A stretch of DNA of 64,000 nucleotides from Macrostomum lignano (GCA_002269645.1 NIVC01002646.1:62001-126000); one strand, 5' to 3'; positions 495 to 60,557 are shown, numbered from the stretch's first letter. The notes: generated from the letters alone by a model not told the origin. A program made the numbers and translations.

Positions 495-539
495 CAAGGA
501 CGACTAAAGTAACGTATATATCTACTTAAGTAGTCCTTG
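495..539. mobile_element. 45-bp palindromic insert (17+11+17), probable DNA-transposon excision footprint
   Basis: Arms CAAGGACGACTAAAGTA / TACTTAAGTAGTCCTTG (2 mismatches), flanked by CATGCAGC (487-494) and CATGCAGA (540-547), 7/8 identical. Confidence 0.7.
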
Positions 540-1099
540 CATGCAGAATAGCTCTAATAGAGGAAAATTAACTGCCGCAGTGCATTTTTCATGACACAAA
601 TCGAGCTACTCTCCAGATTTTCTTTTCCAGGTAGTTCCGTAGCTAAACTACAAAAAACAAAAAAATATCGATGTATCTTGCTGAGCTACGGTTCATGACG
701 GCATGCTGCTCAAGAAAAGAGTCAGAATCATCTTCAGGAGAAGTCTGTTGGCCCGGCGGGACAATGCAGCTTTTTGAATTCTAAGCATTACACTTTATGT
801 TATATTGAATTGCCTGGTCTGCTTTTAGCTGCTTTTTCTCGGATATCAAAGGCCAAGTCCACGCATCAAAGAATAAAAATATCACTGTTTAAAATCCTTA
901 ATATGTGCTTTACTGCTTAAGGATACATTGCAGACTCATCACATCAAAGTATTTTTGGTCTTTAATCGCGGAACAATAATTTGAATTCACGAATGAATTG
1001 CAAACGTATTGCAGAAGGTGCTAACTAGTTTTTAAGCACTTTGATCGAAGATTTTAAAAAATAGAATTCATTTAAAAACTGTCTCGTCGATCATTTCTT

Positions 1100-1432
1100 T
1101 CATAAGCTGTCCAGCATTTTCATTGCACTTTCTCGATCAATTTTTTTCAGACAACCGTAAATCAGTTGTGAAGTGCCGTCTGAAACTTTGCAACCGGACG
1201 CAATGCAATTACTCACTTCTTCCAGATTGTCACCGAATTGGAATATACAAGCTCCGTACACTGACTTGATCTCACAGGTTTCCGAAAGAACACGAGCTGT
1301 TCTCCAGCACTCAATATCCATTTCACTTTGCTCGCCAGAACCAGCTGCATCCTCGATAGCTGCGGTTGCCATGGAAACCAGGGCAAAAATAAGAACGCAA
1401 ACTTTAATAATTTTTCGGAAACTCTCAGCCAT
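1100..1432 (-). CDS. Small secreted 6-Cys protein A (110 aa), family not recognised
   Basis: ATG at 1432 downstream of acceptor-like TTGCAG (~1483). Hydrophobic leader MAESFRKIIKVCVLIFALVSMATA. Cys spacing C-x10-C-x8-C-x13-C-x4-C-x12-C. Paralogous to 3686-3967. Confidence 0.8.
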   Translation of the reverse strand: MAESFRKIIKVCVLIFALVSMATAAIEDAAGSGEQSEMDIECWRTARVLSETCEIKSVYGACIFQFGDNLEEVSNCIASGCKVSDGTSQLIYGCLKKIDRESAMKMLDSL

Positions 1433-2843
1433 GGTAATGGTTATCCAATGGGTAGCTTTCAGATGAGATATAACGTTGCCGATCTGCAACTATAAACTCA
1501 GTCAAAGCTTTAGTTGATGGTCTCTGTTTAAATAAAACTATTTTAGCAGTGGATAGTGCGTGTATGTTTCGAATATTTTTGCTAGCTTGAAATTTTTCTT
1601 TTCGTTATTCTATTCCATTTTTTCTTAAACTCGATAGAGCAAGCGGCACACAACATTTTAAAATGTTTCATTTGCTGAAGAGTAGATGTCTAAAAAAGTT
1701 TTAGAATCTAAGTAGCTTGAATATTTTATGAAAGAATTTTTAAGTAATATGCAATTGTCAGTGGAAAGAATTTTCATGAGCGCGCCTTCTGTATGGTTAA
1801 GAATTTTTAGCATTTTCAATTTTGCTAAATTGAGATTGAAAAAAAATCAATGGTATGTGAGGCGAGGCGATTCGATTCGTCTCATGTAGCAAACCAGACA
1901 CGAACGATTTCCAAATTTCCCTATTTCAAGCATCAAGTAACGGCTAATGATGCTGTTTTGTTGAAACTATAGAGTGCAAGTACTTGATAACTTGAGCACA
2001 TTGACGTCGGTGTGTTTAAATAATTTACCTTTTAGGGATTCAGTTTTTCATAACTGCAATCAATTTTGCCCGCAGAACTTCACGACTATATCCATGTCTC
2101 ATAGCTTCCTGTTACCTTCAACACATTTACCATTTACAAGAGAAACGAACGCTACAATCGAACAGCATCGTATGTAAGTACTCAAGTGAGTGGCTAAGGT
2201 CTTCATGGATGTCATCACCAAGCAGAAGTGCATTCATTCAGTGAACCATACCCAAACGTACATCCAGAGATGTCCAGGGCCTGGTCGACATCTTTGACTG
2301 AATGATACGTATCCTGAGTACTTTGTCATCGATTGCAGACTCATTTTTACCTCAGACTGGTCTGAAACGTTTTACTAAAAATCTGTGCAAGTAGACTATA
2401 GTGTCATAATTTTTATTGCTAGACTTTAGGCAGTAACACTACACTATAACTATTCTTTTATTGTGAGGATTGCCACAGAGAGTATCTGCAAGCGCGAAGT
2501 TTCTACAAGGATGATTCCTGCTGCAAAAATATCACTGTTCCAACTATGAATGCCTCTATTGATGTTGATTGATGAGTGAAATCAAAAGCGCCTTTTCTAC
2601 CTAGGAGAATAAGACTACTTTAAATTAATTAGTTATTGCATCATAGAGCTCTGCACTAGTAGTTTAGCCTACTAGATTTAACTAACTTTAACAGAATCAG
2701 AACAATAACTTTTGTTCTCTAGCGATAACGTGCTTGACTTTGTCAGATTTTGATTATTTTGCAAAAGGCATGCTTTTAACAATCTTTCTGGCCGAAGTAA
2801 CCGGACCTCATCAAAATACGCCGTAAAATATACCACTCAGCCT

Positions 2844-3066
2844 ATGTCAAGTTCTGCTCATAGTAGTTTCAAACTGTCCTTGTTAAGCAACTTCCACGAC
2901 ACCTGCCGTCAGCATCGACATTAGCTGTTCAGCTGAGTCGGGCGTCTCCTCAGTGTTCTGCATCGTGGAAAATTTTAAATCCACACGACACAGCCTGCTG
3001 TCGCTGTGCCTGGCGCAGAAGTGCGGAGGAGCGCCAGCCGTTATCGAGCGCTGCATCCACTTCTAG
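2844..3066 (+). pseudogene. Broken third member of the Cys-rich peptide family (5 Cys)
   Basis: Frame 2887-3066 reads ATSTTPAVSIDISCSAESGVSSVFCIVENFKSTRHSLLSLCLAQKCGGAPAVIERCIHF*, which aligns to peptide B. In-frame TAA at 2884-2886; ATG 2844 joins only with a 1-nt indel; third Cys missing. Absent from the ORF track. Confidence 0.6.
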
Positions 3067-3685
3067 TCTATACGAGCTACCTGTTTATTTCTGCTCTTAA
3101 GCTTAAATCTTTCTATTATAGTCATAAAGACTTATGCAACTTGAAACTTTACGCTGCAATCTTAGTATTGTTTAATTAGTTTAGTGAAAACTTAAGCTCG
3201 ACTTGAGCCCGTGCGTGCAACATTTCCACGTCTGCCGACGTACCCGACGTACCCAAGTCACTGGGAATCATTTGACAGCTGCGTGGATAGATGCCTGCTT
3301 GGCTGATTATCAGTTAAATATGAAAGATTTGGCTTTAAAAAACGTTACATCAACCTGCAGGCAAATGACTTAAACATTGGTTTATTTGCTCTTAAAAATC
3401 TAGCGATCACACTAGCGGAAAAAAATACCCAACTCGACAATGCATTTCGTAAGCTTGTTTCCTGTTCAAGATTCGAAAAAAACTACTTTTCAGCAAAGTC
3501 TTTAAGATTAGTGAGCATGGCGTTGCCAGTCAACTTCACTTGCTGCTAATGCGTTGCAAACTTGAACTTCTCACATGAGTAACATTTGTCAATCACTTAT
3601 CTTTCGAGACCGTATCAATTTGTTTTATTCAATCGTAACTAGTAAAAAATCTTGCGAAAGTCATTTGAAAAGCGCAACTGCAATA

Positions 3686-3967
3686 TCAAGGCTTTTTAAG
3701 ACAACTGACAATCAGCTCGGCCGATCCTCCGCACCTGCCAGCCAGGCAGTTCGCCACCCTGTTGTAGTCGCCGCTGGATGATGCCGCACAGCCGAACAGC
3801 GAGTTGACCACGCACACTAGAGAGTTGACGCCAGCCAGCTTCATGCAGTAGGTGTCGATGTAGATCCGCGGTGCATCGTTCTTTGGAGTCGCATCGGCAA
3901 CAGTCATCGGTCCCAGGGCTACAAGCGCTAGCAGGACTTTCAGATGGCAAAGCTTTGAAATTAACAT
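3686..3967 (-). CDS. Small secreted 6-Cys protein B (93 aa), family not recognised
   Basis: Leader MLISKLCHLKVLLALVALGPMTVADA. C-x10-C-x7-C-x13-C-x4-C-x9-C. Shares GD-x4-V-x-NC-x-A-x2-C and LI-x2-CLKK with protein A. Confidence 0.8.
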   Translation of the reverse strand: MLISKLCHLKVLLALVALGPMTVADATPKNDAPRIYIDTYCMKLAGVNSLVCVVNSLFGCAASSSGDYNRVANCLAGRCGGSAELIVSCLKKP

Positions 3968-4816
3968 CTTTGCTGACTAGAAAATCACCCGTGCCCAACT
4001 AATGGAATGAATATATATCTTAGTTCTGCAATCCAGTGCGTGGCTATATGACCAGCGCTACATTTTAAATAGTGCTGTTGACTTAACTAATCATAATTTA
4101 TAGCCTAATAGTAAACCAATTAATATCATAAATTTCTTTACATAGGAAACTAGCCACAATCTTCTCGGGTACAGGTTCCAGAAAAACCGACTTTTTTCTT
4201 TAGAGTTTGGCCCTTGTGTAAGCTTGCCTAAGCTTGTGTTGTGTAAGCCCGTATCTATACAGTAGGGAATTAATAAACCTCTCTCGAAGCATTGCCCTTT
4301 GTAGTTTAGCTTGTTAATTACCGACAATAAAATACAAAGCCATATGCCATTTTCCTTTGGTTTAGGGTACAGTCAGGCTGAGAGTTCAATTGAAAGAATG
4401 GAGTATCAGGGTACTTGACAACATAAAAAAACTATTGCACTCGGTAAATGCTACTAAATATCTTACTATGCTAGTAGTAATATGCTGTGAATATATTTGT
4501 TTTAATTCCCTTTTCATTTAAACTTCCTTATATTTTCATAAAGTCGCAGTAGGTTTCAGAAGTTTTTTTTTCTTTTTTTTCGCGAAAAGGATAGTCCTAT
4601 TTTAAAAACGCACTGAAGAGTATGATTAATTTTTTTCAAAGTACGGATTGCACTTTGAATTTATTTTCATTAAAATATTAGCATAAAGCATGCGTGTTAT
4701 AGTACGTATTTATACACGCAAATGAAATGAGATGAATAAATAATGTGAGAAAAGCATTTCCGTAAATAGAAGTTATAAATTCACTTCGGAATAACAAAAT
4801 GATTTTGCGCACGAAT

Positions 4817-6398
4817 TCAAATCAGCGCCTCTCGCTCCTGGTCTCTATCGCGCATCTCAGCGGCGGCGGCTGCAGCGGCGGCCTCTTTGATGTCCAGCTG
4901 TTGCAGAAGCATCGCGGTGGTTGGTCCGAGGTCTGCTAAATCCCGATCTAGAGAAGGACTGTCTTCAACGGCTTCTGCTAAAGATAAAATTGAAAATCGT
5001 TTAGTAAACCTCATTAGGCCATTTTTTAAACAAAACAAAATACATGTACGTTCAACATATAGGACGCAAAATCATATACGACAATTCATAACTATATTTC
5101 GTCTATTGGTATTCAGGTATTTTATGAATTTATTCCGTTTCTGGTTTACTGTGAAAAATTTAAATTAAATACCAAGTTTTTTTCCTTTTTCTATAATTTA
5201 CAAATTACAGTGTTGCTATACTGGTGCAAAAAATATCGCGTTCATAAAAGAAAACTTTATGAAAAAACAATTCATTTACTGAAAATGGTAAATGCTAAAG
5301 ACTTAAGTAGCCATCTAGCAGTATTATCAATTTGGCTCGTCTTCATTCTAAAATCTCCTTCCATTCTCACTTATTTGCACCGCCTATTCAATGCCCCTTA
5401 GAGCGCCCTCACTGAAGTTTATCCTTTCCTTAACACTTCTCTTCATCACTTTTCCTTTTCGTTTCATTCGTATTAGCAAGTGGCACTTTTTCATAGATAA
5501 TTCCCCGATGATTGCCCGAACCGAGCAGGAAGGAAATATCTCCCTAAGGCGCTGAGAGGCCTAAGGCGACTCGCCCTTACAAAGAGCCTCTCCACTAACC
5601 GCAGCCTGTCAAGCGTGCGAAGAATAAGACGCCGGATCTGGGCTGGAGATTGCGCCAGTTTCGCTGGCCAAGACATCGGTGGCCAAGATCCGAGCTTCAA
5701 ATGCTTCCATCGCAGCTAAGCCGAAAAAAAACAGCCCCAAGATGAAACAGGGGGCGAAGAAAAAGGTATTTTGATCCCCGCAAAATGCATATTTTATCCC
5801 CCTAGGACCCAGCAGTCTTCGAGACATAAGCTCCCCTGGAATAGGGCTGTTGATAACAAAAAATAATGAATCATGAAAGAAAGCTCATACTGTAATAATG
5901 TTTTTAGGCTGCTATTTTATGAAAAAATGCCGCAAAGTGGCGAAACACTTCTGTATCGTCAATTTAACAACTGCCTAAATATTTCTAACTAATTCTGCTA
6001 TAATATTACACATACCTTCACTTGCCGTTGTCGATGGCGCTGGGTTCTTCCCCGCCGCAGCTTTCGTTGTGACCGGCGTCGTGTCGAAGGTTAATTTAGT
6101 TTTATCGACTTTTGAGTTCACTGACCGTTCACTACTTTGATTATTGTCACACGCTGGCTTCTTTTCGGCCTTCCTGGCGGCCTCTCTGGCTTCTCTCTCG
6201 CATTCGCTGCAGTAGCTGTCCGAGCCGAGCAGCTAGCATCGCCCGGATTCTGATCATCGTTGTCAAAGTCACCTTCTGAGCAGCCGCCATCGACGTCACT
6301 GCCCGCCCGATTGTCAAAATCATCTTCAGACTCCGACGAAGAAGACGAACCAGCGGCCAGAGATGCGGACTCCCTGTCTTTACTGGAGCTGCTCCGGT
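4817..6398 (-). CDS. 3' exons of an unidentified gene (Ser/Asp-rich, AT-hook-like RPPGRPKR), one frameshift
   Basis: Exon 6398-6016 (TGCAG acceptor, GTATGT donor, 383 nt, one base short of keeping phase) and terminal exon 4977-4817 (TTTAG acceptor, ...AAAAEMRDRDQEREALI*). 5' exons not located. Confidence 0.4.
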
Positions 6399-7006
6399 CT
6401 GCACCAAGTTAGATAGTTGACGATCGGCACCTCCGATCGGCGTCCGTTATTGAAGGTAGGGGTACTACCCGAGCTACAGAACTCAGGGGTTTTAGTAGCA
6501 ATATAAGCCAGGAAGTCTTCACCTCTCTGGTTAATATCAGAACTGCCCCAGTGGGTATGGTGGGCGTTGATATCGCCTGCCACAAGCAGCTCATAATTTC
6601 TGGTGGAGCAGAGCTCGACCAGTGTGACAAGCTCCCCTGGGATCATCTCGCCGTCACCCGGTAGGTAAACGGAGGCGATGAGGGTAGCACTCCCACTCCC
6701 AGGGAGTATGTCTTCAGATTGGATGACGCAGATGTCCCTGGTGGACAGGTCCGATCTGAGCCATGCGTTAATAGAATTGGACACCATGATGCAGGATCTT
6801 GGTGTCATGTTTCCCTCCCGGGTGCCAGCGGTTAAACACTGGTAGCCGGTGGGGACATGTTGGGGGCTGCCCCTTAGCGTCCAAGGTTCCTGGATAAGGA
6901 TAATCCCTGGCGCGTATTGGTCAGTGTGCTTCAAGAGGTTGACCGAAGCAGCAATGCCGTGCTGCAGGTTGACCTGCAAGCAGTGGATGCCCTGGGAGAC
7001 GGTCAT
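6380..7006 (-). pseudogene. Retrotransposon APE endonuclease domain, truncated ORF2
   Basis: 208-aa ORF with exo/endo/phosphatase motifs. After PTFNNGRRSEV it runs into non-element sequence instead of the expected IDLT motif and RT. Confidence 0.85.
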
Positions 7007-8756
7007 GTCTACTGTCCAGGGGAGGAGAAAAGCAACTCATTCTCAGCCTCATCGGTGAGAGTTGAGTCGCCAATTTCCATTGGCTCAGGCAAGGACCACT
7101 AGAAGTAACTTCTAGTGGTCCTTGGGCTCAGGCCCAGCCGCCTCCCCAGCCGCCGCGGAGGCGGACACGGCGCCCACGGCAGGTGAGTCACCTAGCCGCG
7201 CTACACCGCCCTCCCCCCAGCGACTGGGGTACGGCTGCTGCCTTCGCCTTGCGCCGCCCCGCCGTCGGGAGTCTGAGCTCGGCCGGCAGCGTCCTGCTGG
7301 TGGTAATCCCACCAGTTGGAAGGCTGAACCATGCCGTCGTCCAGTTCCCTCGGCTGGCTTTCAGTGTTTTTGCGAGCAGCACGAGTCTGCTCGAGGTGAA
7401 GTCTCAGAGACTGAGCTTCGTCAAGTGCGCGCTGGATTAGCCCGGACCGCCGGTTACTGCGGGCGGGTCTACGTCCGCGCGAGGCGGACTCAGCAGCGCG
7501 AATAGCCTTGTTAGGCTCGGGATCGGGTTGCTGCTGCCGCTTGGCCGGCGGAGCCTGAGCCCCAGCTCCGGGAGCGGCGCGCTTCCCGTCGTTCTTGGTC
7601 TCCACCTTGCCCTCCTCACAGTGGAGGATGGTCAGTTGATGGAGACCAAGCTGACGTGGAGGTTTGTGCCGTGTGGTAGCCGCTTGGCCCATCCCTCCGT
7701 CAGGCCGAGGATGACGGTGGCCCCGATCGTGCCCTTGCGGACCGTGCTGTGGTACACAAGACCACTGGCGTCAAGATCCGGGTGCCGCTTGAGCAGGAGC
7801 TGCCGCAGCTGCTCCCCGGACTTGATCGCACTGTCGGCCGGGACCCAAATCCGATGGCGGATGGTCTTCGGCCGCTCGCTCTCCAGGGCGAAGGTCGACT
7901 GGCCCAGATCGCTGTGCCAGTCGAACTTGGGCAGCTGATCCCGCAGGGTCTGGGTGCTTTCCTTGAATTTGCACCACAGTAGGATGCACCCGTTCGCCTT
8001 GGTGGACTTGACGATATCCACGAAGACGCCCTTCAGGGTTAGGTTGAGCAAGCCCTCGTCGATGGTACGCCACGCGACGTCGAGCTGCTCGGGCGTCAGG
8101 TCGAAGTCCCCGCCGAGGATCATCACGGCGGGTTGCAGCGGCTGCTTGACCTTGGAGGCGTAGGACTCGGAGGTCTTGAGCGGGGCCGCCTTGTCCTTGG
8201 AGAGCGGTAGGCCGGCAGGGTTTCCCCCTGAGAGTCCGAGGACACGGCGGTTCCTGACGGCCCAGCCGCGCCACTGGACTCCCCAGAGGGCCTCCCCGCT
8301 GCGGTGGCTCCCGAAGGCCTCACCGCGGCTTGCCCGCCCTCCGCGGGCGCAGCAGCAGCCCGCTTCTTCTGCCGCTTACGGTTGCGGCGAATGTTTCGCT
8401 GCCGTCGGTACTCGGCCGTGCGCGGTCGGCTAGACTGGCGGCCAGGGTGCTCGGCGGCAGCGTTAGCTGGCCCAGTTGGACCAGGTTGGGCCTTGGTGCT
8501 ACCAGTGGTAGCTACCGGAGCGGCTGATCCCGGTGGGCCAGAGGCGACCGGGTCAGTTTCGATCGTTTGGGATGGTGGCGTTAGTGGTCATAGCTGAAAA
8601 GCGGGGAGGGCTACTCGTTACGCGAGTTGAGTACCCGACTGGCCGACACCTCAAGCCAGCCGGTTTGAAAAAGGGGACCGCTAGCGACCGGACTACTCCC
8701 GGCCTTCCAGCCCATCGGCACGGTCAAACACCTTCGGCATTAGAGGGCCTTAGGCA
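6420..8756 (-). mobile_element. 3'-truncated non-LTR retrotransposon (LOA/R1-like): 5'UTR, frameshifted ORF1, APE endonuclease of ORF2
   Basis: ORF2 start encodes APE motifs (QVNLQH, IQEPW, SVYLP, GDINAHHTHWGS, NQRGE, TPTF) and breaks off at ~6420 with no RT. ORF1 ~8591-7012 is spread over several frames and includes SYASKVK plus a DUF4780-like region. Confidence 0.85.
7090..7124. mobile_element. 35-bp perfect palindrome (17+1+17) with 8-bp TSD, inserted in LINE ORF1
   Basis: CAAGGACCACTAGAAGT-A-ACTTCTAGTGGTCCTTG between GGCTCAGG (7082-7089) and GGCTCAGG (7125-7132). Removing the insert and one TSD restores the ORF1 tail GEAAGPEP-MEIGDSTLTDEAENELL... Confidence 0.85.
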
Positions 8757-9597: not shown

Positions 9598-9633
<36 letters not shown>

Positions 9634-9644: not shown

Positions 9645-12600
9645 CAGTGTACATGTTTTATACGCGTCATATACTCTTTAAGCATATATTAGCTGACTTT
9701 TAGAGAGTTACATGTACGATCGAGTACAGTTACTTGTAAAACATGTATAGTTATGTGATTAATGTGATGTGATGTAAGGTAATGCAATACAATGTAATGT
9801 AAACCAATGATGGTATTGAAAGTGCATGTCATTTATGGAAGCTCTTCTTAAAAATTGAATGAAACTCATGAATTGTAGTTTATAGAAAAATAAAATCATC
9901 TTCGAATCATTAAAGTTTCTGGCAAAATGTCATTGATGCAAGTTAATTACGAAAGAACCAAGTTTTTCTTTATTAAAATCATCTACACCTAAGTTTGTTA
10001 AATTGTAAACTAAGATTAGACGGATTACTTTTCAGCACGCGTAAAATTTTCATTGTGTGCCTAAAAGTTCTTAAGCACACATTCTTAAGCATACATGCCC
10101 ACATTTCAAAGTAAAATTTGCTCGTAAGTTTTGCAATGAATAGTAGTAATAAAGCATGTAAGTGAAAAATAAAATGACTTTTAACGTTAAAAACGTAAGA
10201 ACTATTATAGTTGCGAAGTGTCTTTGATTTAATCGCTTAAAAGCATATTAATATTTTCAAAATCACCTGTCGAGCCGGTAGAAATATAAATTAGATCCTT
10301 GGAACGAACACAGGAAACTTTCGGCCCAACTTACTATTTTAAATAAACAGGCGCAAGAGCCAATTTTAAAACGGCTGACGCGCGGCCCGGTGAGCTGTCT
10401 GCTTGACTCTCCCGTGGCAAACTTATTAACGAACGAGGAAACTTTCGGCAACTAGCCTTACCATCAGGCATCAGCCATCGCCATGCCTAATTCCTACTAA
10501 CGTATCTACGACTGCTATACGAGTAATAATAATTCTTTTGCATTTGGGCAAATAATATAAATTGACTAGGTTCAATTGCTTTCACGCGTACTCTACATGT
10601 ACTAGACAAATCTAGTTAGATCAATCAAGCCGATGCCCGATGGCTATGGTTAGACCTATATTTGTCATTTGTGCTTTAACTTAACATTTCTTAATTAGCA
10701 TCGTTAGGTAGGACCTATGCCTATGGACGATTCGGAGCGCTGCCCAGGGCCTGAGTATAGTCTCTGTGCAGGCTAGTAGGGGCCTATTGTAATTATTTAT
10801 ATAACTGCAATTTAATAAATTATAGCTAGATAGATAGATCAATGAATAGTACTAGTATAGGCCTATTTAATCATCAGTTATCTAGTAGATATCAATCATA
10901 ATTGACAAAGAGCCAAAATATGTGGATCAATGTTGGCTTTTCTAATTCAACATAGGTCTAGGTGCAATGCATTGCCATTAGACTTGTATTTATTTTGTAG
11001 CATAACTAGGGCCTATTCTATAGTTTTGTTTGTTAAATTATTTTGACTCTAGAAAAAAAATCTACAAACTATTTTTAGCACAAAAACTAATTTTAAGAGA
11101 CTAATGATTAAACACTAATTTGAATAAATATCTATTACTAATATTAGGCTTAGTTTCATTAACACTTATTGTAATTTTCAATTTGGCCTAAAAAGCTCAA
11201 GTTTAAAAAAGATAAGACTTTTTTATGACTTTTTGTTTTTTTCTAGCCAATTGGCATGCTTTCAAGTTTTATCAGTTCATCATTTATACCATAGTTTGAA
11301 TTGTGTTGTGTATTAGTATAGGTATAGGCCCTATGGCTATGCTGGGTCTAGTAGGGGAAAAAGTATAGGACCACATTTGTATGCCAGTATTAAAAAGTTT
11401 TCAACTATGTACACTGAAGTTGTACACTTTTTTCATTTTTGAACCTATTATTCCTGCATAATTAAAAACTAGAAACTATGGACTTTTTAATGTGCAACGA
11501 GAAAATAGGCCTACAATTATAAAAGAAGTACGTTAAATATTTTTTGCTAAAAATGAAAAAAAAAATTAAATTTGTTTTTTTTTCTATGTTCCATAATGAT
11601 AGTGTTGCATATAGTCTATTCTATATAAAGTCATTTTATTTGATCCTAACATATATATAGGTATATCATAGATATAAGCCAAAATTTTCCACTGTGTCAT
11701 TAGTCATATATGCTAGGATGTAATATGTATGTTGATGTATGTTGAAAAATGGCAAGTTCCCTTGTTGCTGTATACCGGGAAATCCCAGTATACATGTTGC
11801 CTTCCAAACTATGGCATTTATAGAGTCTAGTGACTTAGTAAGATTTTAAAATGTTCAATTTTCATGTTTTTGTTGTTATTCTTAGGTAGATCTAATTTGT
11901 ACAAGTAAATAGACATCTCATTTGTAAAAATTGATTTAGAAATAAAAAAGTTATGACTATTTTATTGTGATAATTTCTTTGATTTTTATGGTATATTTTT
12001 TTTCAATAACAACTATGATTTGTTAATTTAAATATTAATTGAATAAATTAAGTAGAAAAAAGCAAGTCAAAAATGGTACAAACATTTTAAAAAGAAACAA
12101 ATAACAAAAGTAAATAAAATAGTAAGATTATGTAAAAGAAAAAGAAAAATCATATTTTTAAATATAAAAAACTTTTTAGTAAAAAACTTTTTTATTTCAA
12201 TTCTTTTGAACTGTCTTGTTCATTTTTATATTTGTTTTCTTCATTTTTAGGTGTATACTTTGTTCCCAATCCAATAGCAATATTGATATACATAATGTTA
12301 GGGGGTGCAATCTTTGTAGCCTTTTCCAGGTGAATCCAGGTAAGTTTTATAAAAAATTGCTATAGCTATTCAATGTAGAATATTATGCCAAAATTCTACA
12401 TTGATAAGTCATAGGTGGAAAGTAGTAGCACAATGTTTACTATTGAGCTTTATTGCAGCCAGTATTGAGGCTAACATTATAAAGAGAAAAGTTGTGGCAC
12501 AATCTCAATTAGAATTATTCAGTTAATAAGATTTTGACCATTTCTAGCCTCCATTAAAAGCATTGGAAAAACTCTTTCAAATATTTTACCATCTTCCCAT

Positions 12601-18725: not shown

Positions 18726-18794
<69 letters not shown>

Positions 18795-21700
18795 GCAGTT
18801 CAACGCTGAAGTCTGTGCAGGCTGTGCTGCGTGACCATATTTTGAATACACATTCTCAAGTCCGTCAGGTCCATCTAGCTGTCTATAGAGTCTGCCAGGT
18901 CTGTGCTGGCGTATGCTGTTTCATCAGGCATGCTAATTCCATCCTTCTTCATCTCTCCCGCAGCTGCTGAACCATCAGGAGACTCTGCTAGCCCGCCTAA
19001 GCGATTCCTCAGTTGCCAAGCGGATGTCGCACAGCTCAGACACATCGTCAGCCTACTCTGGCAGCGGCGAATTGGACAGCTCCGTACAGAATTATGACAG
19101 TGATGAAGAGCTTCATCAGCAGATGCGGATGCTGGACGCTGATTCGGCTCACGGGGTTCAAGTGACGCCCGACCTGCCTAGGCGGAGTCCCCTACTAATT
19201 GCCCTAGAAAAGGACCCAACTGAAAGGTCAAATGAGGACATCGAATTATTGCTAGACTCCTTTCAACGTTTGCATGCGTTCTCAAATTTCACTCGAGCTA
19301 CTCAGAGGCAATTCGCCGGCTGCATGCTGTACGCGGTGGTTGAGAAACCTGGACAGGTTGTACTGGATGACGGAGAGAAGCTGGACTCTTGGTCCGTTAT
19401 TGTTGATGGCGAAGTGGAGATTCAACGGCCTGGCAACGCGCCCGTGCAGCTGCACTGCGGCGATGCCTTCGGAGTGAAGCCGACTACTGAGCGGCAGCAC
19501 CACGTGGGGGTCATGCGGTCGCTGGTGCCCAACTGCCGGTTCGCCTTCATCACTCAGGTTGGTTGCTGCTGGGACTGCAGCTGGTTGTTTTTAACGCGTC
19601 TCAGCTTGAGATTTCTAAGTGTCTCATCCTGAGATTTCTAAGTGTCTCACCTTGAGATTTCTAAGTGTCTCACCTTGAGATTTCTAAGTGTCTCACCTTG
19701 AGATTTCTAAGTGTCTCACCCTGAGAGGGATTTCCTAGCCAGCCTCCCAGATCTTCAGTTGCTGGGCCAGCCTCCCAGATCCTCAGTTGCTAGGCCACCA
19801 GCCTTCAGATCCTCAGTTGCTGGGCCACCAGCCTTCAGATCCTCAGTTGCTGGGCCACCAGCCTTCAGATCCTTAGTTGCTGGGCCACCAGCCTCCCAGA
19901 TCCTCAGTTGCTGGGCCAGCCTCCCAGATCCTCAGTTGCTGGGCCAGCCTCCCAGATGCTCAGTTGCTGGGCCACCAGCCTTCAGATCCTCAGTTGCTGG
20001 GCCACCAGCCTTCAGATCCTCAGTTGCTGGGCCACCAGCCTCCCGGATCCTCAGTTGCTGGGCCAGCCTCCCAGATCCCCAGTTGCTGGGCCAGCTACCC
20101 AGATCCCCATCAGTTGCTGGGCCAGCCTCCCAGATCCTCAGTTGCTGGGCCAGCCTCCCAGATCCCCATCAGTTGCTGGGCCAGCCTCCCAGATCCTCAG
20201 TTGCTGGGCCAGCCTCCCAGATCCTCAGTTGCTGGGCCAGCCTCCCAGATCCTCAGTTGCTAGGCCAGCCTCCCAGATCCTCAGTTGCTGGGCCAGCCTC
20301 CCAGATCCTCAGTTGCTGGGCCAGCCTCCCAGATCCTCAGTTGCTGGGCCAGCCTCGCAGTTCACGAGTTAATGACCCCCTCATCCACCGTACTCAGGAG
20401 CAGTACTGCAAGGTGCTCTCAGCCGAAGCGGAGAACACCATAGAGATTCGAGCCTCTGACGGCAGTCTGCAGCTGGTGAAGGAGATCCGCACGCTGGAGT
20501 CGGGTACGCTTAAAAAGCAGCAGACGATAATTCGAGGCACGCCGCAGGCGCTCATCGATCAGCTGCTGGAGTGCCGCGGTGGTTCCTCGGCCGACCCGAA
20601 CTATGCCGACGACTTCCTGTTGACTTATCGCACCTTCTTGGACAGCGGCCTGCCGGTGGCCCAGCGGCTCCTTGAAGGCCTTGGCTGCGGTGGCGAACAG
20701 GCCAGCCGTGCTGTCCGAGTGTTCCTGCTGTGGACCAACAATCATTTCAACGACTTCGACGATTCCAGCGAATTGTTTCGAATATTGCAACACTTCGACA
20801 GGCAGTTGGAACGCCGGGAGGAGACTCGAGGACCGCAGAATCTGCTCAGAATTGCCTGCTCGACAAAGTCGCGATTGAGAAAAGCGGCCTGCCCTGTGGT
20901 TAACAGTGGGGCCAGGTTTCATCTGGGCGAACGGCTGTGTTACGTTCGAGACGTGATTGACAGCAGTCCGGCTGCTCTGTGCGGTCTACGGTCCGGCGAT
21001 CGAGTCGTGTCCATTGGTGGTCAGCCTGTGGAGCAGATGCCGCTGGTGCGACTGAAGAGCCTGCTGCAGGTACGCTGTGCTTGATATGGGAGGAGGGGGG
21101 CAAATATTTGTGCACTTAGTGCCATTTTGTAAACCTAATAGTGCCATTTTTAATTAAAGGTGCCATTTTTAAACTAAGGGTGTCATTTTTAAACTATGGT
21201 TGTCATTTTTAAACTAAAAGTGCCGTTTTTAAACTATAAGTGCCATTTTAAACTATGGGTGCCGTTTTTAAACTATAAGTGCCATTTTTAAAACTATGGG
21301 TGCCATTTTTAAAACTATGGGTGCCATTTTAAAAACTATAGGTGCCATTTTTAAAACTATAGGTGCCAAACTATTGGTGGTATTTTTGAAACTATGGGTG
21401 CCATTTTCTAAACTATGGGTGCCATTTTTGAAACTATGGGTGCTATTTTTAAAACTGTAGGTGCCATTTTTTAAACTATGGGTGCCATTTTCAAAACTAT
21501 GGGCGCCATTTTAAACTAAGGGTGCCATTTTTGAAACTATGGGTGCTATTTTTAAAACTGTAGGTGCCATTTTTTAAACTATTGGTGCCATTTTCAAAAC
21601 TATGGGCGCCATTTTAAACTAAGGGTGCCATTTTTGAAACTATTGGTGCCATTTTCAAAACTATGGGCGCCATTTTAAACTAAGGGTGCCATTTTTGAAA

Positions 21701-24700
21701 CTATGGGTGCCATTTTCTAAACTATGGGTGTCATTTTCTCAACTATGGGTGTCATTTTTGAAACTATGGGTGCCATTTTTTACTATGGTAGCCATTTTTA
21801 AATTATGGGTGGGTGCCATTTTTAGACTAGGGGTGCCATTTGTAAACTATAGGTGCCATTTCCAGACTATGGGTGCCATTTCCAGACTATGGGTGCCATT
21901 TCCAGACTATGGGTGCCATTTTTTTGTTTTGATTTTACCAAACCTATCATTTGGTAATCATTATTGATAATAATCAATTGTTATTATCAATAACAATTGA
22001 TAATAAGTTTCAAATTGATAATCATTATCATCCCTCCCACCACCAGCCGTCGCATCAGCAACAGTCTGACGCTAAACTCGACTTGACAGTTCGTTGGGAT
22101 CCGCTAAATTTTTATAAACTGTTGCTGGCCTCCAATGCATCGGCCACAGCAGCTGGTGGAGGCCATCAGGACTCGGGGAATGGCGGCAGCAGCAGCAGCG
22201 GCGGCGGCTCACTCGGCAGAGCCACAGGCCGTCAGCTGGTTCCTGGCAAAGCTGGTAGCGACACCGGAGCAGCGGAGAAGGTTGCCGCCTCTGCTGCAGG
22301 TACATCTGGAGGTCACGCTCTGAAGGGATCGACCTCCAATCCAGATTTAAGCGCCGGTATTGGCAGTGTCAGTGGCGTAGCCGATCAGCCGGATCACGTG
22401 ATCCGTGTCTTCAGACCCGACGGTGCGTTTAAACTGTTGTGCATCAACCAGGAGACTACGGCTAGAGAAGTTGTGATGCTGTCTATGCAAGAGTTCGGAT
22501 TGCACGGCTCAAGCAATGAGTATAAACTCATGGAGATTAGCGTCAATGCTGGGCCGCTGATCCGGCGGAAGACCCTGTCGGATAATCTGCAAGACCTTGG
22601 CAACCGGCTAGCGTTGAACGCTCGCTACTATGTTAAACAGCAGAATGAGCTGGCGCACCAGTTCCTGTCAGATGCGGATGCTCAGGATGTGCTCAGGGAG
22701 GCTGCTGTGGACTTTTTGCAGGTGAGCTCTGCTTATTGCTTAGCTGATACCCACTTGAACATTTTGCTTGGTTAAATAATTTTGCTAAAAAATAGCTAAT
22801 TTACATAGATAGTGGCCAGTTTACATGAATATTGGCCAATTTACATGCTTAATAGCCAATGTACATAATTGGCCAATTTACATGAATATTAGCCAATTTA
22901 CATGAATATTAGCCAATTTACATGAATATTAGCTAATTTACATCAATATTTGCCAATTTACATGAATATCGGTCAGTTTACATGAATATTGGCCCATTTT
23001 CATGAATATTAGCCAATTTACATGAATATTGGCCAATCTACATGAATATTAGCCAATTTACATGAATATTAGCTAATCATAATTTAGCTACATAATCATG
23101 ACTGATAATTTACATGGATATTAGCCAATTTACATTAATAGTGACCAATTTACAAGCATATTGGCCAGTTTGCATTAATTTTGGCCAATTTGCATAGATA
23201 ATTAACGAGAAAATCAGGCAGTTTACAAAAATAGTATTAATCAAATGAATGACTCATCAATAATCATGGTTAACTTTTTATTTATTCAGAATAATAATAA
23301 AGCCTTTTATATATGTATTTGAGGTTAATACCCGTTTCCCAGACTTTTTCCTCTGGAATCATAGCGCGTAAAAGATTATATAAGATGTATAATTATTGCA
23401 CAGAATCCCTGCTAAACCCTCAGATACTTGTAACTTCTGCCCTTGGTGTCCTGACTTGCCACTGTTATAGTGCATGCAGCTGTATATCACGCACACACAC
23501 ACGCGCCTCGCACTAACTGGGTTCTAGAACTAATCCCACGACTTAAACCCCTCCTCTATCAAGTCTTTTCCATTCCCTCTTTTTCTATTGATGACTCATC
23601 TTGCTATACATCAGTGCCAGGTGCCGGAGGTCCACTCCGCCCATTTCTGATCCTAGCCCCCCCCCCCTCTAGTTCAACTCGGGATGGGACTTCTACCTAT
23701 GACTGTAGTTGTGTAAGGAAAAAATGTTTTTATCTACCTGTTTTTTGGGGTGAAAAGTGAGAGAGAGAAATGCGAAAGACTGACATATTTTTTCGTTTTG
23801 TACCTGGCACTAGATAGGTCTGCTTGAATAGTGATGTAGAGTAGGCTACTTCTACACATATTGTTTATGTTTAATAAGCAGTAATGACTGATAAAACTTA
23901 TTATTTTTTAGAAATTTTTAATGCCTACGAATTCATTATCAAAAGTCGATTCGTATGAATAACAGAGAGGGGGGAGAGAGGTAGTTAGGAGAGAGGAAGA
24001 TAGGAGATTTAGGGGAGAGGGGAGATAGGAGAGAGGAAGATAGGAGATTTAGGGGAGAGGGGAGATAGGAGAGTTAGGAGATAGGAGAGTTAGGAACGAG
24101 GAGAGATAGTTGAGTTAGGAGAGAGGAGAGAGGAGAGAGGGAGATAGGAGAGAGGAAGATAGGAGATTTAGGGGAGAGGGGAGATAGGAGAGTTAGGAGA
24201 TAGGAGAGTTAGGAACGAGGAGAGATAGTTGAGTTAGGAGAGAGGAGAGAGGGAGATAGGAGAGTTAGGAGAGGGACATAGGAGAGTTAGGAGAGAGGGA
24301 GATAGGAGAGTTAGGAGAGAGGGGAGATAGGAGAGATAGGAGATTGGAGAGATAGGAGAGAGGGGGGGGTAGAAGAGAGGAGAGATGGGATAGAGTGAGA
24401 TAGGAGAGAAGGGGATAAGAGAGAGGGAGAGAGAATAAAATAGAAGTGATTGGTTTAAAGGCAAAAAAGGAGTCGATTTCAAAACTTTGAGCAGTCTGTT
24501 CCAGTTTCCCAATTAATTTACATGCTATAGGTTGCGACAAAATCGGCTCTATACCGATATGTATCGAAACGCCTAACAAACCTTATACACCTAACAATTA
24601 ATCCCAGCTGGATCCGCAAGAGGTAGCTATGCGCATCACTACAGAAGACTTCAACGTGTTCCAACGAATCCTGCCTACCCACCTGGTGGACTGGTGGCAC

Positions 24701-27700
24701 CGGAAAGAGAAGGCCTCTAAAGAGATCAATGAGCTTTCGGCGGTCACTGAAAAAGAATCCAATTGGCCAGTTAGCGAGCTCACAGCCGAGCAGAACACCA
24801 ATCGTCGAGTCCGTTTATTGAAGCACTTTCTCAAAGTGGCACAGTACTGTCGTCAATTGAACAATCTCAATACCTTGATGAGCCTGACTCTTGGCCTAGC
24901 AAAGAGTCAGAACTCTCAGCTCAATCCTGCGTGGGAAAAATTGCCTAAGAAATATCGAGACATTTGGAAGTCTTTAGAAAAACTAACTGATATCCGGATG
25001 AATCACTCTAGCTACCGGCAGCTTTTTAAATCCGATAAATTCCAAGCTCCGGCCATACCTTACCTGCCTATACTGTGCAAAGATTTAACTGCTATTCGCG
25101 AGTGCAATGAACAGATGAAGGATGGTCTAGTAAACTTTGAGAAGCTGCGACTGCTGGCTAGAGAGGTAAGTTTGTAATCTTGTGTGTCTTTCAGTGACTT
25201 CTATGTGAAACTTCAGGGGATTGCTGTACCCTCTCTGAAACTTCAGGGGATTGCTGTACCCTCTCTGAAACTTCAGGGGATTGCTGTACCCTCTCTGAAA
25301 CTTCAGGGGATTGCTGTACCCTCTCTGAAACTTCAGGGGATTGCTGTACCCTCTCTGAAGCTTCAAGAGGTTGCTATATCCTCTCTGAAACCTCAAGACG
25401 TTGCTATACCCTCTCTGAAACTTCAGGGGGTTGTTGTTATACCCTCTCTGAAGCTTCAAGATGTTGCTATACCCTCTCTGAAACTTCAGGGGGTTGTTAT
25501 ACCCTCTCTGAAACTCAAGGGGTTGCTATACCCTCTCTGAAACTCAAGGGGTTGCTATACCCTCTCTGAAACTTCAAGAGGTTGCTATACCCTCTTTGAA
25601 ACTTCAGGGGATTGCTATACTCCCTCTGAAACTTCAGGGGGTTGCTATACCCTCTCTGAAACTTCAGGGGGTTGCTATACCCTCTTTGAAATTTCAGGGG
25701 GTTGCTATACCCTCTCTGAAACTTCAGAGGGTTGCTATACCCTCTCTGAAACTTCAGAGGGTTGCTATACCCTCTCTGAAACTTCAGTGGGTTGCTATAC
25801 CCTCTCTGAAACTTCAGGGGGTTGCTATACCCTCTCTGAAACTTCAGGGGGTTGCTATACTCTCTCTGAAACTTCAGGGGGTTGCTATACCCTCTCTGGA
25901 ACTTCAAGAGGTTGCTATACCCTCTCTGAAACTTCAGGGGGTTGCTATACCCTCTCTGAAACTTCAGGGGGTTGCTATACCCTCTCTGAAACTTCAAGAG
26001 GTTGCTATACCCTCTTTGAAACTTCAGGGGGTTGCTATACCCTCTCTGAAACTTCAGGGGGTTGCTATACCCTCTCTGAAACTTCAGGGGGTTGCTATAC
26101 CCTCTCTGAAACTTCAAGAGGTTGCTATACCCTCTCTGAAACTTCAGGGGGTTGCTATACCCTCTCTGAAACTTCAGGGGGTTGCTATACCCTCTCTGAA
26201 ACTTCAAGAGGTTGCTATACCCTCTCTGAAACTTCAGGGGGTTGCTATACCCTCTCTGAAACTTCAAGAGGTTGCTATACCCTCTTTGAAACTTCAGGGG
26301 GTTGCTATACTCCCTCTGAAACTTCAGGGGGTTGCTATACCCTCTCTGAAACTTTAAGAGGTTGCTATACCCTCTCTGAAACTTCAGGGGGTTGCTATAC
26401 CCTCTCTGAAACTTCAGGGGGTTGCTATACTCCCTCTGAAACTTCATGGGTTTGCTGTACCCTCTCTAAATCTTAAGTTGGTTGCTGTACCCTCTCTGAA
26501 TCTTCAGGAGGTTGCTATACCCTCTACAACCATTTGAAACCATATTTTTACACTTAGGTGCGCGGCTTCTGCCACTATGCGCAGGCCAGCTATGAAGGTC
26601 ACACCTGGCGGCAAGGTGGGCATCATCAGGGCTCCGCCTCAGCTTCCACGGCGGCCACTCTGCATCTTGCTGGCGCCCCAAATGCCTCCGTGCCGCCACC
26701 GCTTCGACGGGCCGGCAGCAGCTCCGCCCTGACCGTCGGCTCCGGCTCAGGGAAGCGCCGCTCCGCCGCGGTGGCCGCTCTGACCAAGAAGCTTCACGAC
26801 GAGACCATCGCCGAGAAGAAGCTGGCCGAGTACGTGTCCCGGCTCCGGCTGACATCGGCTGAATCAGACGGAGGCCCGATCTCCCAGTGTCCCGATGTGG
26901 CCTCCACTGCTGGGACTAAGTTTAACACTACTAACGATGCCCAGTTTAATAAGCTCATGTCGCTTAGCGAGGGCCGCAAGCCGGCCAAGCATCAGCACAT
27001 TCCTGCTGCTGTGCCCGCCGCTGTCGTGGCCGGCGCCGCCGCGCCTGCGGCCAGACCGCCTCTGCCGCCGCCCTATCAACAGGTCAGTTTATATCATATC
27101 TATCTCTGTCGCCCTCCCAGATCCCCAGTTGCTGGGCCAGCCTCCCAGACCCCCAGTTGCTGGGCCAGCCTCCCAGATCCTCAGTTGCTGGGCCAATAGC
27201 CTCCCAGATCCTCAGTTGCTGGGCCATCAACCTCCCAGTGTCAGTCGCTGGGCCAGCCTCCCAGATCACCAGTTGCTGGGCCAGCCTCCCAGATCCTCAG
27301 TTGCTGGGCCACCAACCTCCCAGATCCTCAGTTGCTGGGCCACCAACCTCCCAGATCCTCAGTTGCTGGCCCAGCCTTCCAGAGTGTCAGTCGCTGGGCC
27401 AGCCTCCCAGATCCTCAGTTGCTGGGCCAGCCTCCCAGATCCTCAGTCCCCAGTTGCTGGGCCAGCCTCCCAGATCCCCAGTTGCTGGGCCAGCCTCCCA
27501 AATCCTCAGTTGCTTGGACAGCCGCCCAGATCCTCAGTTGCTAGGCCAGCCTCCGGATCCTCAGTTGCTGGGCCAGCCTCTCAGATCCTCAGTTGCTGGG
27601 CCAGCCTCTCAGATCCTCAGTTGCTGGACCAGCCTCCCAGATTCTCAATCCTGACCCATGGCAAGCTTATTTCACTTTCCACAGGTGATGCAGCAACGGC

Positions 27701-33868: not shown

Positions 33869-56138
<22,270 letters not shown>

Positions 56139-57675: not shown

Positions 57676-57992
57676 TTGGTCAACAACACATTCAGTATAG
57701 ACACTTTGTTCTTAACTTACAGCACCTAATTCTTGACTCTTATAGCACTTGATAGCACAAGTCCCTAAAGTACGGTCGTAAGAACAGAACTGCATATTTA
57801 CATAAGACGAACACTCTGCATACATTCATTGTAGGTATTGGCTTGGCAGGAAAGAATTAGAGTCAATAGCTGTCTGCCCCAGTCAACTCTGTACAAGTGG
57901 GTGAATATATTAGGGGACTAATCTTCAAGCCTTCTTATTACAAAATACCTGAATTATATTCTGATTTTTTATTCAAGTCAAAAGAAGAAAAA

Positions 57993-60208
57993 ATGTCAAG
58001 CCCCAAAGTGTACGAATTTCGTTACTACCAAATTGCTGCAAGATTTGTCGTCCAGTTCAAGCAATTGGCAGCTCAGCATGTGCCGCACAGGGCGAGACGG
58101 TCGAGGCTCGTTGGAATCTGGATGACCGAGCTTGGGGCACTCAATCATGTGCTGCACGTCTGGGAGTACGGTATGCTGCACTTCTGAGGTCAATGGGTGC
58201 TGGGAGGGGTCAGTGGGTGCTGGAAGGGGTCAGTGGGTGTTGGAAGGGGTCAGTGGGTGTTGGAAAGGGTCAGTGGGTGCTGGAAGGGGTCAGTGGGTGT
58301 TGGAAGGGGTCAGTGGGTGTTGGAAAGGGTCAGTGGGTGCTGGAAGGGATCAGTGGGTGCTGGAAGGGGTCAGTGGGTGTTGGAAGGGGTCAGTGGGTGT
58401 TGGAAAGGGTCAGTGGGTGCTGGAAGGGGTCAGTGGGTGTTGGAAGGGGTCAGTGGGTGTTGGATAGGGTCAGTGGGTGCTGGAAGGGGTCAGTGCAGGT
58501 GCTGGAAGGGGTCAGTGGGTGTTGGAAGGGGTCAGTGGGTGTTGGAAGGGGTCAGAGGGTGCTAGAAGGGGGATTGGTGTGCTAGAAGGGGACAGGTGTG
58601 CTAGATAGGGGGGACAGGTGAGCTAGATAGGGGGAACAGGTGTGCTAGATAGGGGGACAGGTGTGCTAGAAGGGGGACAGGTGTGCTAGATAGGGGGGAT
58701 AGGTGTGCTAGGAAGGGGACAGGTGTGCTAGAAGGGGGACAGGTGTGCTAGATAGGGGGGGACAGGTGTGCTAGCTAGGGGGGACAGGTGTGCTAAATAG
58801 GGGGGACAGGTGTGCTAGATAGGGGGGACAGGTGTGCTAGATAGGGGGGACAGGTGTGCTAGATAGGTGAGACATGAGTGCTAGATAGGGGGACAGGTGT
58901 GCTAGAATGGGGACAAGTGCAACACAAAGTGTTATGCTTGTCCCCAAGAAGAGTGAAGACGCACTATAATCAAACACAATACATTTGTTCCATGCTCTTG
59001 CAGAATCCCTGGCTCACCGCAAGTCCGTGAGAGACGAGATGTACACGGACACTGAGTGGACGGAATTTCTCGGCCAAGTTGGCCCAATGTTTCAAATGAT
59101 GGACAACTGGCTCTGCCGCTGTGTGGCTGGCGATGCCAGCAGCCGGTGGCCTGACAAAGGTGAGAAGTAGAGAGGAAGGGGAGCACAAATGTCATGGTCC
59201 CAAAACTTCATGAGGGCAGGTTTATGATCCCAAACTTTATGATCCCCTAACTTCATGATCCCCAAACTTCCTGATCCCCAAACTTCCTGATCCCCAAACT
59301 TCCTGATCCCCAAACTTCATGATCCCCAAACTTCATGATCCCCAAACTTCATGATTCCCAAGCTTCATGATTCCCAAACTTCATGATCCCCAAACTTCAT
59401 GATCCCCAAACTTATAATGATCCCCAAACTTCATGATCCCCCAACTTCATGATCCCCAAACTTCATGATCCCCAAACTTCATGATTCCCAAGCTTCATGA
59501 TTCCCAAACTTCATGATCCCCAAACTTCATGATCTCCAAACTTCATCATGCCCAAACTTCAGGATGCCCAAACTTCAGGATTCCCAAACTTAATGATTCC
59601 CAAACTTCATGATTCCCAAACTTCATGATTCCCAAACTTCATGATTCCCAAACTTCACGATCCCCAAACTTTATGATTCCCAAACCTTATGATCACAAAA
59701 CTTCATGATCCCCAAACTTAACAATCCCCAAACTTCATGATCCCCAATTTTCACAGATTTCATTAAATGCTAATTAAATTGTCACCTAATTATAAAATGC
59801 AGAGTTCTACCAGCTCAGCACACTGAAATTTGCACCAATCGAGTCAGCAAAGACTGCTGCGACCGACTGCATCGAAGTCTGCAGCCAACGACCCGGCTTC
59901 AAGGCCGCCTTTGAAAGCCTGGTTGGAAAGGCGAACAGGCGTGAGATGGCTGGAGATTCTCTGCCTCCAAAGCACCCACTGCTTCCCTCAGCAACCCGTG
60001 CTATTTTATAGCACAAAAATCTATACAATGCTCTCATTTAATTGATTTTTTACTTCTTCCGCTTCTAAAACCCGCAGTCTATGTCGTGGAGTCGGCCGCC
60101 GATCCTGACGACTTTCTGAGCCAAACAAACCTGTTGGAAAAATCGGCTGGCGTTGCTATGGAAACCAAGATATTGACACCGCTACCATGGAGCGAGTGGC
60201 AGAGCTGA
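57993..60208 (+). CDS. NIPSNAP3: NIPSNAP family protein (NIPSNAP3-like), 200 aa
   Basis: Exons 57993-58170, 59004-59159, 59803-59940, 60078-60208 (603 nt). VYEFRYY...LVGIWMTELGALNHVLHVWEY-ESLAHRKSVR; second repeat FYQL...GKANRLYVV; ends LTPLPWSEWQS*. An upstream exon is possible. Confidence 0.85.
58193..58565. repeat. 20-bp G-rich minisatellite
   Basis: GGAAGGGGTCAGTGGGTGTT units. Confidence 0.95.
58575..58915. repeat. ~21-bp minisatellite
   Basis: GGGGGACAGGTGTGCTAGATA units. Confidence 0.9.
59195..59750. repeat. 16-bp minisatellite
   Basis: CCCCAAACTTCATGAT units. Confidence 0.95.
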
Positions 60209-60246
60209 CAAATTTTATGTAAATAATATTTATCAATCTATCTATA

Positions 60247-60557
60247 GGGGTTGTAGTGGTTAGAGCGTCGGACTCAGGACTGGAAAGTCGGGGGTTCGAT
60301 TCCCGATCCCACAGAAACAATTTGTGTTCTTGAGCAAGACACTCAACTCTGCATTGCTTCAGTTCACCCAGCTGTAAAATGGGTGCCAGCATTAGCCACA
60401 GATACTAGAATAACTGGAATACTCTAGTATCTGTGGCATTAGCTGGGGTAACTGAGGGTGTGTGGCGACCCCCCGGTCCTTTGGACTGAACAGCCGTACG
60501 CAGCCTTCAGATGTGCCGCCCATTAGGGCAGGTGTAATCAATTATTATTTATTATTA
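60247..60557 (+). mobile_element. tRNA-derived SINE with CORE-like central domain
   Basis: A box TAGTGGTTAGAGC and B box GGTTCGATTCC. TTCTTGAGCAAGACACTCAACTC...CAGCTGTAAAATGGG resembles the MIR/CORE domain. (ATT)n tail; 9-bp TSD CTATCTATA at 60238-60246 and 60558-60566. Confidence 0.8.
60397..60435. mobile_element. 39-bp palindromic insert (16+7+16) with perfect 8-bp TSD, nested in the SINE
   Basis: CACAGATACTAGAATA...TACTCTAGTATCTGTG between GCATTAGC (60389-60396) and GCATTAGC (60436-60443). Confidence 0.85.

Follow-up and report, generated by a model that had tools for sequence, protein, structure and literature searches.

Three palindromic inserts of 35–45 bp, each located between copies of an 8-bp direct repeat, are present in a 64,000-nt stretch of Macrostomum lignano (GCA_002269645.1 NIVC01002646.1:62001-126000; hereafter the window, with positions counted from its first letter). 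We think that the inserts are probably, though far from certainly, fixed scars left by the excision of cut-and-paste transposons from two P-like, long-stagger families. The initial annotation of the window had interpreted them in this way, as scars of P-superfamily lineages. The target-site duplications (TSDs), the common termini, the existence of relatives elsewhere, an anatomy like that of P-element repair products and the presence of two terminal inverted repeat (TIR) families all speak for that interpretation, which is supported in part; no transposase or full-length element was linked to these ends. Their origin from mobile elements, also claimed in the annotation, is clear from the TSDs, from the common termini and from relatives at many loci in other animals, which share a palindromic target motif. 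The three sites are laid out as follows:

487-494, strand (.): left TSD copy of site 1, CATGCAGC, with 7/8 identity to 540-547
495-539, strand (.): insert of site 1, 45 bp, arms 15/17 complementary
495-511: left arm of site 1, CAAGGACGACTAAAGTA, 17 nt
512-522: center of site 1, ACGTATATATC, 11 nt
523-539: right arm of site 1, TACTTAAGTAGTCCTTG
540-547, strand (.): right TSD copy of site 1, CATGCAGA
7082-7089, strand (.): left TSD copy of site 2, GGCTCAGG
7090-7124, strand (.): insert of site 2, a 35-bp perfect palindrome with the layout 17+1+17
7090-7106: left arm of site 2, CAAGGACCACTAGAAGT, 17 nt
7107: center of site 2, a single A
7108-7124: right arm of site 2, ACTTCTAGTGGTCCTTG
7125-7132, strand (.): right TSD copy of site 2, GGCTCAGG, TSD identity 8/8
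60389-60396, strand (.): left TSD copy of site 3, GCATTAGC
60397-60435, strand (.): insert of site 3, 39 bp, arms 15/16 complementary, second TIR family
60397-60412: left arm of site 3, CACAGATACTAGAATA, 16 nt
60413-60419: center of site 3, ACTGGAA, 7 nt
60420-60435: right arm of site 3, TACTCTAGTATCTGTG
60436-60443, strand (.): right TSD copy of site 3, GCATTAGC, TSD identity 8/8

Direct reading and an independent scan bear out the anatomy first described for these sites, with two corrections: the TSD copies of site 1 differ at one base (catgcagC on the left, catgcagA on the right), and sites 1 and 3 have imperfect arms. The arm lengths are 17, 17 and 16 nt, with one side possibly reaching 18–20 (the range is given here as 16–18). 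As the annotation had it, all three inserts open with CA-N-R-G. Sites 1 and 2 have CAAGGACNACTA(G)AAGTAAC in common and are one indel apart, and site 3 shares only CA...ACTAGAA with them; two TIR families, CAAGG... and CACAG..., are represented in the window. The arms are unrelated to their own flanks at each site and are common to separate loci, in agreement with the earlier statement that they are not flank-derived. A templated origin of the site 3 filler, considered because TAACTG occurs again ~15 bp downstream, is statistically meaningless.

An unbiased scan of the whole window for 8-bp repeats (at most one mismatch) around inserts of 24–100 bp with ends at least 12/17 complementary returned sites 1–3, one AT-rich chance match and nothing else. 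The same loose scan gave a mean of 0.17 matches per window in 30 third-order Markov simulations and, at the match strengths of the real sites, our rough analytic estimate (with no program behind it) places the chance expectation at about 1e-5 per window. Sites 2 and 3 alone were recovered when the TSD had to be exact. The window holds no weaker or intermediate examples of the layout, and a search for further copies of the arms with up to three mismatches returned the known sites and chance matches only.

Excision by a P-like transposase would account for this anatomy. In the proposed mechanism, a cut-and-paste DNA transposon inserts and creates the 8-bp target duplication; in a later excision the transposase would cleave one strand (3') where the element meets its flank and the other (5') deep within the inverted repeat, so that each flank would be left with a 3' single-stranded tail consisting of the outermost ~16–18 nt of the TIR. 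Host end-joining would then link the two non-complementary tails bluntly, through 1–2 nt of microhomology or with a few filler nucleotides, and the product would carry, between two TSD copies, one TIR tip, the junction and the second TIR tip in inverted orientation. Two families, with termini CAAGGACNACTAGAAGT... and CACAGATACTAGA..., would have left such products in the window.

The Drosophila P element provides the precedent. Its transposase generates 8-bp TSDs and cleaves the 3' strand where the element ends but the 5' strand at 17 nt into the 31-bp repeat (PMC7776569). The flanks are therefore left with 3' tails of 17 nt that are identical and not complementary to each other, and the joined product has the layout TSD+17+junction+17+TSD, which sites 2 (17+1+17), 1 (17+11+17) and 3 (16+7+16) fit closely. 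Donor repair products of P{wa} (acccagacCATGATGAAATAACATA / TATGTTATTTCATCATGacccagac) comprise blunt joins, 1–3 nt microhomologies, 1–3 nt inserts and templated inserts (PMC2895639). The excision products known from Drosophila melanogaster resemble the window inserts: copies of an 8-bp TSD enclose them, they retain ~17 nt of each TIR in inverted orientation, and their ends are joined bluntly, through 1–3 nt of microhomology or with short or templated filler. They are laboratory events, whereas the window inserts are fixed alleles in a non-insect animal, and the P terminus CATGATGAAATAACATA is unrelated to CAAGGACCACTAGAAGT or CACAGATACTAGA. To our knowledge, the P-element/THAP9 type is the only transposase biochemically known to make such a long-stagger cut, and the parent elements would therefore most likely belong to the P superfamily. 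Transposases of this superfamily are marked by a THAP domain and by an RNase H fold that bears a GTP-binding insertion. P-like elements do occur outside insects: zebrafish Pdre2/THAP9 has 13-bp TIRs and 8-bp TSDs, and Pdre2 elements can be excised by both zfTHAP9 and the Drosophila transposase, although their repeat organization differs from that of the window inserts. Tc1/mariner footprints are alike in principle, since nucleotides from the transposon ends stay behind between the TSD copies after a staggered cut of the donor, but they retain 2–3 nt per end next to a TA duplication, compared with 16–18 nt per end and an 8-bp TSD in the window.

Relatives of the inserts were sought in metagenomes with the pattern CAAGGACNACT N{6,36} AGTNGTCCTTG, which demands only 11+11 nt of arms and no TSD. 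More than 120 contigs matched, and 120 loci were fetched for study. Of the matches, 58 (about half) have no relation to the inserts, being either bacterial hairpins or an outward-extending 52-bp palindrome at contig ends; the remainder are eukaryote-like contigs of low open reading frame (ORF) density or metazoan mRNAs. In these eukaryote-like contigs and transcripts the same insert layout recurs with the terminus CAAGGACNACT..., surrounded by perfect, flush 7-bp TSDs at 8 independent loci, by an 8-bp TSD at one and by 6/7 matches at several others. Because the pattern did not ask for TSDs, their presence independently identifies CAAGGAC...GTCCTTG palindromes as transposition products, and such palindromes occur widely among invertebrates. 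Old copies are among them, common to contigs whose flanks are only 83–94% identical. Transcribed examples lie in the 3' untranslated region (UTR) of a syntaxin-like mRNA (L002, L074 and L100) and in that of a CUB-domain protein mRNA (L036); the syntaxin-locus insert has been kept between contigs that are ~90% identical, with its length ranging from 32 to 34 bp. One locus (L086) carries the same insert with the same TSD (GCCTGTG) at 1077-1116 and 1856-1895, 779 bp apart. This pair was considered as the two ends of a longer element and rejected in favor of a local duplication, which implies that scars can multiply passively with host sequence.

The 52-bp perfect palindrome, CAAGGACAACTCCTGTCATGATCAAG-CTTGATCATGACAGGAGTTGTCCTTG, is found in L005, L010, L016 and about 45 other loci (samples Ga0105053-55, Ga0209390, Ga0209491 and Ga0335398). 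It continues into inverted flanks (tatttatacc / ggtataaata), and is mostly found no more than ~140 bp from a contig end, so that it is likely to belong to a long, multicopy foldback repeat at which assemblies break. It lacks a TSD and bears no architectural relation to the window inserts. Scans of genome and viral-contig collections yielded nothing with a TSD: the only matches were an operator-like palindrome of an actinomycete, single matches due to chance and one match in a phage coding region. Literature searches with the terminal sequences returned primers only, and a genome-wide description of fixed P-type footprints was not found among the papers searched.

The most informative relatives are five independent loci from one host (group G1), located on non-coding-like contigs (Ga0056128, Ga0209454 and related samples). 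Their flanks are unique to each locus, and repeat samplings of the same locus are 99.8–100% identical. The inserts, 39, 40, 43, 43 and 45 bp long, were decomposed against the TIR model CAAGGACTACTAGATTACTTA into left (L) and right (R) arms, which yields the following junctions: (i) L21/R19 with a 1-nt (A) overlap; (ii) L21/R21 with a TA overlap; (iii) L21+C+R21; (iv) L21+CTT+R19 and (v) L21+GTAA+R20, whose filler duplicates part of the neighboring arm. In 5/5 loci the arms equal the model exactly over their outer 19 nt, except that locus A, which was sampled twice, has one substitution in one of its copies (L027). By contrast, the centers are different in all five loci, a small sample, and consist of 1–2 nt of microhomology or 1–4 nt of filler. 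The confinement of variation to the centers argues for independent end-joining events rather than copies of one mini-element, and the range of junctions agrees with the experimental end-joining spectrum of Drosophila P-element donor sites.

TSD length and target preference bear on the identity of the parent transposons. The hAT element hobo creates 8-bp TSDs in 99.8% of insertions, P creates 8-bp and 1360 creates 7-bp TSDs (PMC3276498); Galileo creates 7-bp and occasionally 8-bp TSDs (PMC4168063). The window TSDs (8/8, 8/8 and 7/8) and those of the relatives (7 bp, with one of 8 bp) correspond to the 8 or 7 bp of the P superfamily. The invariant 8-bp TSD of hAT elements is seen in the window but not at the level of the family, as most relatives with the terminus CAAGGACNACT have 7-bp TSDs. 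The co-occurrence of 7- and 8-bp TSDs among near-identical termini therefore fits the P superfamily better than hAT. 1360 (Hoppel) and Galileo share their 7-bp TSDs with the relatives rather than with the 8-bp window copies, and Galileo has a documented 7/8-bp mix within one family, as observed among the relatives here; we know of no characterization of 1360 or Galileo footprints.

The 13 loci with 7-bp TSDs yield the symmetrized target motif TRG-GCTNAGC-CYA, which extends beyond the TSD and is close to the 1360 motif GTTNAAC. All three window TSDs, GGCTCAGG, GCATTAGC and CATGCAGC, agree with it, including that of site 3, and a single target motif for all three suggests that related transposases served both TIR families. 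Palindromic target motifs are generic to DDE transposons, so the motif cannot tell the families apart. An argument against hAT from its target rule, nTnnnnAn, was considered and dropped, since the P-element consensus GTCCGGAC has the same T2/A7.

Several observations weigh against the excision-scar explanation. First, the arms are 16–18 nt long in the window, 19–22 nt in G1, about 22–25 nt in another group and 11–16 nt in the transcripts, so that arm limits are lineage-specific although the first 11–14 nt of the termini are almost identical. Over the relatives as a whole the arms span 11–24 nt. Stagger length is a structural property, and one could expect relatives this close to have it in common; a family-specific TIR length would explain the differences equally well. 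The window arms (17, 17 and 16 nt) do agree with the retention of no more than ~17 nt, but relatives keep 19–22 or about 22–25 nt, and the sharp, universal limit at ~17 nt predicted in the annotation is therefore unsupported; the data instead hint that the retained length is specific to each lineage. Second, two of the G1 loci have the same 43-bp structure and are 1 nt apart. Third, hAT termini have the consensus YARNG, with which CAAGG agrees and CACAG does not. Fourth, a Pfam search of the 65 non-repeat ORFs of the window revealed no THAP, Tnp_P_element, hAT or other transposase domain, and the ORFs of the fetched related loci contain no THAP, Tnp_P_element or hAT domain. No longer element with the same ends exists within the window, and neither there nor in the 120 fetched loci did a search for autonomous or longer elements bounded by them, with a 7–9 bp TSD, yield one, leaving the anticipated full-length elements with THAP/P transposases without a counterpart in this material. 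Fifth, no empty site was seen, the window containing none of the paralogous SINE or LINE (short and long interspersed nuclear element) copies that were sought there. As to the annotation's suggestion that there are many such inserts genome-wide, the window was selected for these three sites, which makes extrapolation beyond it unsafe.

The arm lengths in particular keep alive a second explanation, unlikely in our judgment but deserving weight, in which the inserts are micro-MITEs (where MITE stands for miniature inverted-repeat transposable element), units of 30–50 bp comprising hardly more than two TIRs that inserted as such and made their own TSDs. Arm length would then simply be TIR length, which would explain why it is family-specific among elements with almost identical termini. 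The matching 43-bp G1 loci, a group of copies of 47–52 bp with similar overall design at several loci and the intact TSDs on both ends also agree with micro-MITEs. Against this, MITEs typically occur in multiple copies of the same length and interior and measure ~50–800 bp. The 35–45 bp inserts, admittedly a small sample, are smaller than described MITEs, and sites 1 and 2 have neither length (45 vs 35 bp) nor center in common. The G1 loci have five centers between arms that match the model but for the L027 substitution, and extra copies are absent from the 64 kb. Synapsis poses a further difficulty. A duplex of 35–45 bp is far below the persistence length of DNA, and pairing both ends of even the 35-bp insert in one transpososome would be sterically implausible, so that the inserts are unlikely to have moved as units. 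Drosophila P also needs internal transposase-binding sites beyond its 31-bp TIR.

A third explanation, quite improbable in our view, is that the inserts are in situ remnants of elements from another superfamily with 7–9 bp TSDs (hAT, Mutator, Merlin or one not yet described), which were reduced by abortive gap repair or internal deletion and involved no long stagger. No transposase was found that would assign the inserts to a superfamily; the 8-bp TSD and CAAGG terminus are compatible with hAT; and synthesis-dependent strand annealing followed by end-joining is known to yield internally deleted elements after excision (PMC2895639). Random deletion should, however, spread the retained lengths, and per-side retention is tightly clustered within each lineage. 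Excision of hAT elements proceeds through hairpins on the flanks and leaves footprints with flank-derived nucleotides and no TIR tips. If the inserts are scars, they are not of this type, as their arms are unrelated to the flanks and common to several loci. Known hAT elements and MITEs have 8-bp TSDs and YARNG termini resembling CAAGG, but the MITEs are longer than the window inserts, and the near-invariance of the 8-bp hobo TSD contrasts with the mostly 7-bp TSDs of the relatives. Excision of the Mutator-like element Muta1 is precise or accompanied by small deletions (PMC5225508).

Palindromes arising by chance, or hairpins with a function outside transposition (as protein-binding sites or small RNAs), are effectively refuted by the TSD statistics: the search pattern does match unrelated bacterial hairpins and long palindromes (58 metagenome matches) as well as an actinomycete metagenome-assembled genome, but those matches lack TSDs and extend outward as palindromes, whereas the window sites have 8-bp direct repeats, arms unrelated to their flanks, TSD-bearing relatives at unrelated loci and a chance expectation far below 1.

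A more radical possibility, which we consider doubtful, is that the mobile unit is the 30–52 bp palindrome itself, bounded by CAAGGAC... or CACAG..., or, in a milder version, that related P-like transposases differ in their stagger (~17, ~21 and ~24 nt). If the palindromes were mobile, they would be the smallest known eukaryotic transposable elements, perhaps mobilized in a folded form or as hairpins, and would have spread across marine invertebrates and into mRNA UTRs. Under the milder version, the cleavage stagger could be read directly from genomic scars.

The surroundings of the three sites are those of animal DNA (G+C 44%, CpG observed/expected 0.56), with the following features:

6383-8375, strand −: LINE fragment, GC-rich, with frameshifted ORF1-like frames, interrupted by site 2
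6383-7036, strand −: LINE endonuclease ORF (Exo_endo_phos_2, Pfam)
about 18937-27196, strand +: exons of a RAPGEF2/6-like gene (Pfam: cNMP-binding, RasGEF_N, PDZ, RA and RasGEF)
about 42305-47717, strand −: exons of a phospholipase C gene (Pfam: EF-hand-like, X and Y domains)
57870-58184 (from about 57.9 kb), strand +: exons of a NIPSNAP gene (Pfam)
about 60246-60540: tRNA-derived SINE with A and B boxes TAGTGGTTAGAGC and GGTTCGATTCCCG, host of site 3

Site 2 lies inside the LINE fragment just upstream of the endonuclease ORF, with an ORF1-like frame on its other side. Protein searches for LINE paralogues returned a single uninformative JGI match, and none was returned for RasGEF, in collections with almost no eukaryotic relatives. 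In silico deletion of the insert and one TSD copy extends the upstream LINE frame from 82 to 102 codons (+20), a gain that fits an insertion, if weakly, as the LINE is already frameshifted. The SINE that hosts site 3 has the conserved core ...gagcaagacactcaac...cagctgtaaaatgggtgcc... followed by ATT and CTAT microsatellites, and ARAGORN called no intact tRNA in it; the site is probably within a NIPSNAP intron. Site 1 is located 3' of a small secreted-protein ORF. Two small single-exon ORFs in this part of the window (1103-1489 and 3689-3976, both strand −) have signal-peptide-like N-termini and similar, cysteine-rich C-termini (...CIASGCKVSDGTSQLIYGCLKK vs ...CLAGRCGGSAELIVSCLKK). Judged by these sequence similarities they may encode paralogous secreted proteins; they have no Pfam match and no exact database record.

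Two further kinds of repeat were observed in the window. A 26-bp palindrome, TGTATACCGGGAAATCCCAGTATACA, at 11769-11794 has a 6-bp direct repeat (TGTTGC) on both sides and could be the scar of a different element. The palindrome is close to where a 526-bp candidate element (11289-11814) ends on the right; this element has TIRs of 10–12 bp (CCATAGTTTG...) and an 8-bp repeat, CATTTATA, features that are within chance expectation. Minisatellite arrays with periods of 13–60 bp make up about 41% of the window (within 13995-64000), for example at 19738-20360, 27113-27647, 30964-31990 and 63454-64000. One 28-bp unit (CCCAGCAACTGAGGATCTGGGAGGCTGG) builds arrays at four separate places in both orientations, and other units recur at 36569 and 39793 (38 bp) and at 45155 and 48430 (24–26 bp); this recurrence suggests dispersal by a carrier element.

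Donor-site scars of this kind are known as a phenomenon from Drosophila genetics. What is new here is to find them as fixed alleles in an animal of another lineage, along with the family of CAAGGAC... termini across marine invertebrates and the hint of lineage-specific retention. If the excision-scar explanation is correct, short palindromes with 7–8 bp duplications record past P-like excisions outside insects and preserve the terminal 16–22 nt of elements that perhaps no longer exist at full length. Such scars would allow excision activity to be estimated, and not insertion alone. They would also provide a natural read-out of two properties measured so far only for Drosophila P, namely the position at which the transposase cuts inside the inverted repeat and the way in which the host joins long non-complementary 3' tails. 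Finally, they would explain small perfect hairpins in introns, UTRs and repeats that could be mistaken for regulatory hairpins or small-RNA genes.

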